DNA of 64,000 bases. It comes from Botryllus schlosseri. Lineage: Eukaryota. This document shows positions 26,801 to 32,065 of the stretch, piece by piece. The notes beneath the pieces were generated by a model. It did no database searches, was not told where the DNA came from, and worked only from the letters and a program-made list of their open reading frames with translations. The position numbers were made by a program, and so were the translations under genes. Position 1 is the stretch's first letter. Every line of letters begins with the position of its first letter. Location of the stretch: NCBI GenBank assembly GCA_051294905.1, contig CM119379.1, forward strand, positions 1,240,001-1,304,000, written 5' to 3'.

Positions 26801-29800
26801 ACTTGCACAAACCACTGAATTTTCAAAATGCACAACTAAAACTAGAGCTACCGGTACTGTACTCACTTCGCAAAAGTCGCAAATACAATTTGAAATAACA
26901 AGCTTGAAATGTTTGCTACTAATTGACTAAAACATAACTAAGTTGATTCAATCTAGAACGAGCTAATTCATGTTCATTTCATCGGAATCGGATCGAAAGT
27001 AAGGGCAAACCTTCAAACAGGCCACTTTCCAGGAGGGCCCCTGCTTTCTCCAATTCCTCAAACTCCTTCACAGTAAGAAAAGTGTAGTCGACACCGTCTT
27101 TTTCACTATCTCTCGGAGGTCTTGTGGTGCCTTAATTACCAAAGAAGATTCAGAACCCAAGTACAGATACACACGACTTCACCAGGACATGAGTTACTCA
27201 CAGGGTAGAGTACGTAAATAAAGATTATCTCTGATAGCAGCTTGCAATTCATGGTCAACACAACCAGGATTGAATCTCTCACTTAGGTATTGTTTTAGAT
27301 CCTTTGTCAAAGTTTGCCCTGAAAAATAGATCAAGTTTCAAAACAATGGTAGATCTCAATCTATGCCACTCAGAAACACAATAGTGGATTGAATTGTATC
27401 AGTGTGCTGGTATCAAAACTGTCATTTCTAAGCATGTATCAATTACTAATGTATATATCCGAGCTCCAGAACAGTTTCCAGATAGGAGATTGGAAATTCA
27501 CAAAATTAATATCAGGATACTTCTTAGACATTGTAATTTCAATGGGTTGGTCTCATAACGAGCCACAAAGATCTCAGATTTCCAGATAATGCCATGTTGG
27601 GACAAATAATTCTTGAAGTGTGTTTACGCAACACAAAACATAACAAATCACAGCACTGTTGCTGTTGCTAGGGTGAAACTCTCCACCATGCATTGATAGT
27701 ATCAATCAAATTAGTTGAGCAAAAAGTGGTCACTCATGGCTTGTTTGAAAGAAGATATATTTGCCACAGTGAATAGCACGCACTAGGTATACACCACTCA
27801 TAACATCTTAAACTATATAGTCCACATTAACACCTTCTCTTCCAAGAAACATGAACAAAGCCTTCGCACACATAACTCTCACCCACCTAATACATCACAC
27901 TTGGTATACATGATCTAAAAATGCAAAACGCAAAGGATATTTTTAGTGCATGTGATCTGATTCATCATTGCTCTACAAACCTAATTTCAACAAATAATAC
28001 ACAGCTTGTAATTGTAAACCGGAAATAACCACATTAAATGGGCATTACTATCAGTCTGCAACAGCACAGATAACAATTTGTGAGAATACACCTCTCTAGA
28101 GAAGAAGCAATCGGTCAAAGTACAGGCCTGTAGAAGGAAAAATCATCATGTAAAAGGAAGCTTGCCTTCTTTAACGGTTTTGAACCTGACGGGATCTTTC
28201 GCTTGCTTGATCAAATTGTTGAGATCGAACAAGGTCAATCCCGCCACGGATTGATCGTTCACTTCGAGTAGAACTTCGCCGTCCAGAATTTTTCCGCTGT
28301 TAAAATTATTTCGAAGAGTTTATATTTGTGAGATGGCAATAAATAGCAGTCTGTGAAGCACAGGCCCTAGTTGGCAGATTTCATACATCTATACGACAAA
28401 TAAATACTACAAAATTAATTAGTAAATGCAAGATGCGTGGAATGCTGATCCCAAGAAGAGAGCTGTGGAATCAGAGTAGCTAATTTACACATTTTGAGAG
28501 AATCCAAGTTTTTCAATATACAATTGAATAATATATTCATAGTGCAATAAACCCGAATATTTTCGGATGACACTCATCATGGGAAATCGTCAGCAACTAG
28601 TAGAGAAAATGAAATAACCTTGTATATCAACAATCATATCACCAAATATGACATCACCAGCATGAAATTTCGACTAATCCAGGCGAAGAGACCGCTTAAG
28701 CATTAGGATTGTTGATAGACAATATGAATGTATTATTCAATGGTAATTGGGGTGGAGTGAAAAATGAAAATTTTTGAATTTCAAAAAAGGGTCTTGATAT
28801 GTGGTGCCAAATAGTAAACAAATAAATTATATCATAATTTTGGGTTCGTACACCCTCTAGTGGTCGTGCAATTTCACCGAACGAGCCAAAAACAGCTAGT
28901 TTCGCCATATCTTGATCATCACTTACACTAGAAAGTCAGTTTGGGGCTTAAAAGATGCAGTAGCAACATGTTTCTGTCTCACTTCCATAGAACTTACTCT
29001 TAAAAATGAACAGAAAAAAGTTACAAGCAAATTTCTGATGTTATAGGTAAAATTAAGCACTGAAGCAGTGCGTAGGATGTCAAAAGCGTGTAGTGATTGA
29101 TGTTATGACTGAGCAACATACCCTATCAATTAGAACCACTTTTCAAAATTTGCTTAAACAAATGAAGCCTCCTCCATGCATAAATAGGGCTCGGGCATCG
29201 AATAGAGAACTGCTAAAACTGTTTTTGAAACAGCGTCCATTGGTAGTGCAGCGTCACGATATCGGTAAGTTTATAACAACGGCCCTCATGAGATTTCTTA
29301 CCAAAATGCTGTCGTAGGGTTTGTATCATATTTGTCACAAAGCTCCTGAATGAAAGCACAAACATTGAAAATACACATTCAAAACACAAACATCAATTCT
29401 ATACTGGAAACAGAAAATTTTTGTAGCAGTAGGCTATCATATGAGTATCAGTGTGCACAAACATTAAAATCCTGTATAGTATTGAAAGACTTCACCCGCT
29501 TTCAAGACTTCAGTTTTCGTTTGAGGCTAGCTACGTTTAAATCCTGAAACATGGGTAGATGCTTCAGTAACCACGTTTTAATGTCTTTCCACTGCCTGAG
29601 TGCCTGGTTGTGGTAAGGATGACTGAGCCTTAATGGTGATGATCTTAGGTTTTCCACCTCGACATCTGACAAGGTCGTGATTGCAGGCGGCTGTTCAATA
29701 TCTTTGTGGTTTAAGTTGACAATTTGGTGGAAAGATTAGGCCTTGATGTTGATAATTGGAATTTGGAAGAAACTGATGCTCAATGTCGCTGTTTTAGGTT

Positions 29801-32065: not shown

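Follow-up and report, generated by a model that had tools for sequence, protein, structure and literature searches.

A symmetric foldback-type element from a hAT-related transposon family with long, near-identical ends in Botryllus schlosseri

RESULTS

Structure and boundaries of the element

We examined a stretch of 64,000 nucleotides of Botryllus schlosseri DNA (contig CM119379.1, positions 1,240,001 to 1,304,000), hereafter the window, and use window positions throughout. At 28748-31344 lies a 2,597-bp transposon-like unit whose two ends are inverted copies of each other. A repeat search and blastn aligned the two arms, 28750-29841 and 30246-31342, at 91.1% identity over 1112 columns, and a global alignment of the arms gave 92.4% identity over 1096 aligned bases. 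The arms enclose a unique core (Table 1). The left terminus reads TGGGGTGGAGTG and the right terminus, as its reverse complement, reads TAGGGTGGAGTG; the left and right terminal 290 bp are 97% identical. Directly outside both termini stands a perfect 8-bp target-site duplication (TSD), ATGGTAAT, and the chance of an 8/8 match at these fixed positions is about 1 in 65,536. The empty site was rebuilt by deleting the element together with one TSD copy, and three paralogous copies of the surrounding repeat (21130-21210 and 28495-28560, both as reverse complement, and 34105-34190) align unbroken through the reconstruction. The boundaries of the element and its TSD are therefore real, and the long inverted arms with a perfect TSD that the initial annotation described are borne out.

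Table 1. Features of the symmetric element, with the divergence of the right arm from the left arm
Feature	Position	Strand	Details
Left TSD copy	28740..28747		ATGGTAAT; fits nTnnnnAn; empty site from paralogous repeat copies
Left terminal ~290 bp, canonical long terminal inverted repeat (TIR) of the family	28748..29037	-	Terminus TGGGGTGGAGTG; inner-end marker AAGTTACAAGCAAAT
Left arm, non-coding, from transposase stop to TIR (3′ untranslated region (UTR) by position)	29038..29459	-	Collinear with the end of the open reading frame (ORF) at ~29460
Left arm, decayed C-terminal coding remnant, about residues 625-742 of P0003	29460..29841	-	tblastn
Unique core, 404 bp, transposase residues ~487-625	29842..30245	-	111-residue ORF at 29916-30251; phmmer, tblastn
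Inverted-duplication junction, microhomology	30246..30255		TTCCAATTGA; both parental segments align through it
Right arm, inner part (~450 bp), inverted C-terminal coding remnant, residues ~625-742	30246..30713	+	tblastn; 11.6% substitutions, 8 indel events, 77-90% identity
Right arm, outer part (~630 bp), 3′ UTR-like stretch and ~290-bp TIR	30714..31344	+	Terminus CACTCCACCCTA; TIR aligns to relatives; 3.3% substitutions, 2 indel events, 96-98% identity
Right TSD copy	31345..31352		ATGGTAAT; abuts the right terminus

The repeat into which the element is inserted is very abundant and resembles a miniature inverted-repeat transposable element (MITE). It occupies 28417-28747 and resumes from 31345 to ~31400, reaches a summed depth of up to 5x10^5 in Logan, and has at least 10 partial copies in the window (for example 33897-34166, 21149-21278, 14103-14232, and 17178-17263). 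Its 26-bp inverted ends lie at 28519-28544 and 28720-28745, and the hAT-like element is inserted in its terminal repeat.

Transposase remnants in the core and arms

The core and both arms hold remnants of a transposase. An exhaustive phmmer search with the stop-to-stop core piece (29916-30314, minus strand) returned 1026 proteins (best E 5.7e-29) and placed the core at residues ~487-599 of proteins of ~740 residues, with the motifs HS(R/I)W and YFPSWFEIK in the core. Aligned by tblastn with one of these relatives, P0003 (742 residues), the core and left arm encode residues 487-741 in what is essentially a single frame that contains five stops; from the right arm, residues 637-741 are recovered in two frames. 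This agrees with the original description, in which the same decayed C-terminus with two shared stops was seen in both arms and the transposase continued upstream, here from residue 487 onward, into the left arm only. Mapping of the stops located the shared pair at 30356-30358 and 29736-29738 (TAA) and at 30593-30595 and 29502-29504 (TGA), in the right and left arms, respectively. Both positions are arginine in P0003, and a further stop lies in the left arm at 29814-16. TAA is two steps from CGA and is common to both arms; the stops were therefore inherited. Differences between the arms in the coding part fall on the three codon positions in the proportions 13/11/15, an even spread that indicates neutral drift. 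Given this spread and the shared stops, the duplicated segment was therefore already a pseudogene.

The peptides quoted in the initial annotation are real homologs of the P0003 C-terminus, with HNQAVERH and SGFKR intact in the right arm only. There, CHNQAVERH is read at about 30487-30513, with the codon for the catalytic glutamate, GAA, at 30502-30504. The motif is disrupted in the left arm by 8 bp inserted near 29593, and these 8 bp are missing from a contig of X5, a sequencing run that carries another organism label. Neither a Pfam search with seven ORF pieces of the element nor an ESM Atlas search with the core ORF gave a match, and megablast against phages was, as expected, also empty.

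Relatives have long, near-identical ends

Two fuller-length relatives at two loci, L001 and L002, were reached through fragmentary homologs. L002 (3832-7547 of its locus; 3,716 bp) has TIRs of 299 bp that are 99% identical and the TSD GTCTTCAG, and L001 (4075-7774) has TIRs of ~290 bp that are 92% identical and the TSD TTCTACAA. Both start with TAGGGTGGAGTG. The left TIR of the window element aligns at 72-78% to both ends of L001 and of L002, as well as to a 5′-end fragment at 18253-18545. This fragment belongs to a ~78%-related family member (17822-18545, minus strand) with the terminus TAGGGAGTGAAAA at about 18545; its ~290-bp TIR is followed by codons for residues 54-135 (18073-17822), so that “right-end” sequence stands at a 5′ end. 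No ORF was detected in the fragment beyond these codons. The two ends within a lineage are 97%, 99%, and 92% alike in the window element, L002, and L001, whereas ends from different lineages are 72-84% alike, which is the pattern of concerted evolution.

As the relatives carry near-identical TIRs of ~290-299 bp, the ends of the family are equivalent, and the paradox of an element with “two right ends” therefore largely dissolves. The premise from which that paradox arose, non-equivalent ends, is right for Hermes but does not apply to the window family, judging from L001, L002, and the 5′-end fragment. Only bases ~290-1094 of each arm make up the abnormal inverted duplication. A loose-end sequence at 29033/31058 was considered as the canonical TIR boundary and rejected, as it proved to be nothing more than an indel variant of the same sequence. 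Neither the 5′ nor the 3′ UTRs of L001 and L002 resemble the 3′ UTR-like part of the arms at a detectable level.

Several further observations concern these ends. The ~290-bp TIR keeps 72-84% DNA identity between the lineages represented by the window element, L001, L002, and 18253-18545, with transposases only ~50-65% identical. Invariant blocks include CCCTCTAGT, AATTT, and CTTAAAA, and AAGTTA[C/T]A..CAAAT marks the inner end. Such conservation over the full length suggests a function, with binding sites or a promoter as examples. A solo TIR of the family lies at 25826-26002 and 26592-26704, with its terminus TAGGGTGAAGTGAAAA at 26704; it is divided by an insertion of ~590 bp and adjoins no transposase remnant. 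The transposase frame of L002 falls into five or more pieces (called genes of 104, 133, 72, 105, and 163 residues; two tblastn frames), so that L002 either has introns or is a dead copy with ends kept identical.

The transposase has a Hermes-like fold

We then considered the family to which this transposase belongs. Pfam detected no family in six full-length proteins (E≤0.01), no consistent family among 30 members (E≤10), and no THAP domain in the family proteins. A profile of 30 full-length relatives retrieved only low-complexity noise from PDB sequences, and the only named database relatives are insect “uncharacterized protein” entries. Atlas clusters comprised large arthropod “hypothetical protein” families. 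The nearest named structural neighbors in the Atlas carry hAT Pfam domains.

Fold comparisons were run on the relative P0003, not on the decayed window copy. An AlphaFold (AF2) model of P0003, built from a 30-sequence alignment, reached a pLDDT (predicted local distance difference test) of 84 and shows a DDE catalytic fold of the Hermes kind that includes a helical insertion domain. Foldseek placed Hermes first. VIA-align gave Z scores of 16.0 for Hermes (337 residues), 11.4 for ISCth4, 9.6 for the P element, and 7.8 for Transib, and the Hermes score clearly exceeds that of RAG1 too. All 30 Swiss-Prot models that best matched P0003 were hAT-derived, among them ZBED4, the Ac transposase, DAYSLEEPER, ZBED1/5/6, FAM200, and GTF2IRD2. 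P0003 has conserved D307, D377, and E698 (in CH.QAVER), spaced by 70 and 321 residues; in Hermes, D180, D248, and E572 are spaced by 68 and 324.

The ends agree with this assignment. hAT termini are of the YARNG type, and Ac ends in CAGGG/TAGGG. The terminus TAGGGTGGAGTG is found at five of the six ends of the window element, L001, and L002; the remaining one, the left end of the window element, is TGGGG, one change away. The short TIRs (about 10-25 bp) and dissimilar subterminal ends by which hAT elements are also recognized are not found in the family. All three TSDs are 8 bp long and, in what is a small sample, all three fit nTnnnnAn, with T at position 2 and A at position 7; 5′-nTnnnnAn-3′ is the target preference of Hermes (PMC10368747). 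Fold, TSDs, and TAGGG termini support the initial classification of the element as hAT-related. The fold of P0003 supports a hAT-related transposase, but the family lies outside the sequence-defined hAT domains.

A microhomology junction and two tiers of arm divergence

In L002 coordinates, the window element consists of the reverse complement of 6064..7547 followed by 6476..7547. The 10-bp microhomology TTCCAATTGA at the junction holds the palindrome CAATTG / TCAATTGA, and both parental segments align through it, the reverse complement of L002 at ~6064 and L002 at ~6476; the same holds for L001. A search of 28748-31344 for TAGGGTGGAGTGAAAA with up to 3 mismatches matched the two outer termini and nothing else, so there are no internal termini. 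Outside the element, a terminus-like match to the family end motif with 3 mismatches, CAGGGTGGAGTGATGA, lies at 32765-32780 on the minus strand and may be the end of another hAT-type element.

The arms differ in two tiers (Table 1), with the inner, coding part the most diverged. The inner part is therefore not the latest addition. Stepwise inward growth of the TIRs would leave it the youngest, and the opposite is observed. We infer that the duplication is old and that the outer arms were later homogenized between arms, or else constrained as transposase-binding sequence.

Copies beyond the locus

The family is highly repeated in the organism labeled A, with a summed Logan depth of 10^3-10^4 compared with about 10 in the unique flank. 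One 278-nt contig of run X5 spans the junction (30075-30352) with 5 differences; the run also contains both arm versions at 98-99% identity to the window copy, with no cover of the unique left flank. Logan contigs are 100-500 nt long, too short to span the element, show an empty allele, or count junction copies, and the “skips” listed for them are repeat noise. A run search with 60 bp of the junction sampled two words only, from which words that span the junction cannot be proven. Taken together, a multi-copy symmetric subfamily very probably exists.

With the core ORF as query, a word-indexed protein search gave just four relatives, 47-67% identical, of which none came from this genome. An exact scan of JGI metagenome contigs for the junction pattern gave five loci, which were rejected as chance matches with no further similarity to the element.

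Gene context and predicted hairpin RNA

PDZ-domain exons lie at 4284-16200 on the minus strand, and an ORF at 25242-25493 contains YYGTPKPP; a multi-PDZ, MAGI-like gene therefore runs leftward from above 25.5 kb. The element had been assigned to intron 1 of this gene. The PDZ exons are indeed downstream on the minus strand, but the putative exon 1 at about 31.9-32.1 kb has no Pfam match, which makes “intron 1” plausible only. The RNA of the element is predicted to fold with a minimum free energy of -1770 kcal/mol, versus about -620 for shuffled sequences. The predicted ~1-kb hairpin pairs 1022 of the 1099 arm bases with the opposite arm and has a longest perfect helix of 106 bp. The ~1 kb of double-stranded RNA that had been foreseen is thus reproduced in silico. 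Some probable RNA runs of organism A, their kind guessed by the search tool, contain one of the two sampled junction-region words.

Two neighboring features were also noted. An intronless ORF of 282 residues with a full UNC-50 domain (E 4.8e-88) lies at 34326-35174 on the minus strand, just upstream of the multi-PDZ gene. An apparently intact long interspersed nuclear element (LINE) occupies 39685-44875, with an ORF1-like frame of 489 residues and an ORF2 of 1243 residues with endonuclease, reverse transcriptase, and RNase H.

DISCUSSION

Origin of the symmetric element

In the account we favor, and consider likely, a cut-and-paste family with long TIRs and a Hermes/hAT fold gave rise to the element, a non-autonomous derivative of foldback type that was mobilized in trans. 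The 5′ UTR together with two thirds of the ORF, everything 5′ of codon ~487, has been exchanged for an inverted copy of the last ~120 codons and the 3′ UTR. The exchange most likely occurred in an already dead copy, by a strand or template switch at the partly palindromic 10-bp microhomology during replication or during repair of an excision gap; end-joining between two head-to-head copies could have served instead. The product would have kept two functional ends because the normal ends of the family are already the same ~290-bp sequence. Transposase from intact copies would then mobilize the symmetric product in trans, and its insertion into the MITE-like repeat would create the TSD ATGGTAAT. 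Later, arm-to-arm conversion or constraint on the end sequence would have kept or made the outer ~630 bp alike, leaving the inner pseudogene to drift neutrally.

This account bears on what had been proposed at the outset. That a symmetric unit was inserted as a whole is in keeping with the genuine TSD, but the puzzle over its identical ends finds no support, the ends of the relatives being near-identical. A double-Ds-like or sister-chromatid event is not borne out, since internal termini are lacking and a simple microhomology forms the joint. A Galileo- or FB-like lineage with coding sequence drawn into its TIRs, the other option offered, describes the element better, except that the inner coding part is not the latest addition.

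Several results weigh against the account that we favor. At the sequence level, hAT membership fails in both the Pfam domain and PDB profile searches: Pfam detected neither the hAT C-terminal dimerization domain PF05699 nor a BED finger in the family proteins. A foldback made in one step predicts uniform arms, and the observed two tiers, 3.3% versus 11.6%, need a second process. No direct autonomous parent was seen in this genome; the relatives share just ~50-65% of residues in the protein and ~75-78% of bases in the TIR, and L001 and L002 both have ORFs that seem broken. Finally, neither the protein word search nor the metagenome scan yielded a second copy in which this junction is combined with another TSD.

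The final structure is the same if two copies stood head to head, their 3′ halves were joined by a deletion, and the resulting unit with “two right ends” moved as a macro-transposon, in the manner of double Ds or alternative transposition. The microhomology joint also suits end-joining, and arms drawn from two copies would be unequal, as the 11.6% of the inner part is. Against this reading, no internal termini and no internal TSD are present. The two-step TAA and the TGA are common to the arms, which therefore descend from the same dead sequence, the outer 630 bp differ by only 3.3%, and the palindromic microhomology favors a strand switch; we regard this origin as unlikely. A TSD alone leaves two readings: a symmetric unit may have transposed, or a complete insertion may have been rearranged later. 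Together with the empty site, the TSD proves only that something with these termini was inserted. A complete element of ~3.7 kb could thus have been inserted here and a later template switch between its TIRs, which long identical TIRs would favor, could have replaced the 5′ part, so that the symmetric unit never moved. Run X5 speaks against such in-situ rearrangement, having a contig that bridges the junction and both diverged arm versions at 98-99% identity to the window copy, yet no cover of the unique left flank. We therefore hold it to be quite improbable.

That the inverted arm is a long-read foldback chimera is highly improbable. Palindromic chimeras are known in long reads, and none of the reads or contigs compared spans the whole element, but the arms are 8% diverged, in a structured two-tier pattern with private indels, and are flanked by the TSD. 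The junction is moreover covered by short-read contigs of independent studies, with sampled 31-mers in runs from 2015-2022. A different kind of proposal, compatible with the derivation that we favor, adds a function: read-through from the host gene would yield the ~1-kb hairpin RNA, transposase-coding sequence included, and trigger Mu killer-like small-RNA silencing of the element's own family. Mu killer shares the architecture (PMC3440606), the predicted fold is far below that of shuffles, and the sampled word in probable RNA runs of organism A would fit. These words are, however, not assignable to this locus among many genomic copies, and the intronic position is putative, so that we think this function doubtful.

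Significance

Galileo has been described as unique in recruiting the 3′ coding end of its transposase into kilobase TIRs, and this is now seen in a Hermes-fold, hAT-like family. The search also reveals a large transposase clade invisible to Pfam (1026 representative matches, mostly arthropod “hypothetical proteins”), whose ~300-bp identical ends contrast with the demonstrated need of Hermes for asymmetric ends. If symmetric derivatives do transpose, they would offer a natural test case for end pairing in hAT-type transpososomes, and their copies would be ready-made sources of hairpins inside host genes. In genome annotation, the finding accounts for the “two right ends” type of element. A wider speculation, to which we give little weight, is that a widespread, Pfam-invisible Hermes-fold branch abandoned end asymmetry, works on identical ends of ~300 bp, and so mobilizes right-end/right-end derivatives. 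These would multiply and, if transcribed as part of host introns, would play the role of Mu killer in animals, their ~1-kb hairpins of transposase sequence entering small-RNA silencing of the derivatives' own family.

Comparison with known systems

Double Ds consists of one Ds within another and so has four termini. Like double Ds and Ac/Ds with reversed ends, the window element is of hAT type with an inverted end arrangement; unlike double Ds, it has two termini only and no internal TSD, and its joint is an internal microhomology junction. With Hermes and Ac, the family shares the 8-bp nTnnnnAn TSD, TAGGG-type termini, and a DDE RNase-H fold with a large helical insertion, and the D-D-E spacing of P0003 (70/321) is close to that of Hermes (68/324). 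It differs in its ~300-bp near-identical ends and in having no Pfam match to BED or the hAT dimerization domain. Hermes itself has 17-bp TIRs and dissimilar ends of ~450 bp, and donors with two right ends are inactive, so that end asymmetry is required (PMC10368747).

The closest precedents are TIR extension by ORF recruitment in Galileo and Mu killer in maize. Galileo is a P-superfamily element whose transposase has a THAP domain (PMC3688188, PMC4168063). Its TIRs are kilobase-sized and less diverged than the coding parts, under concerted evolution, and its copies with extended TIRs are non-autonomous and flanked by identical TSDs (PMC4168063). Similarly, the window element has kilobase arms in which the end of the transposase ORF (residues ~625-742) is inverted in both, a perfect TSD, and ends that are concerted within a lineage. 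Unlike Galileo, its TSD is 8 bp and fits nTnnnnAn, P0003 resembles Hermes (Z 16) more than the P element (Z 9.6) in fold, and the family has neither the THAP domain nor the P-element fold of the P superfamily. Mu killer, a derivative of maize MuDR in the Mutator superfamily, has the same architecture as the window element, and its silencing was shown genetically (PMC3440606). The window element differs from it in residing in an animal, in that its hairpin is known from a predicted fold, and in that the unit appears to have transposed and multiplied.

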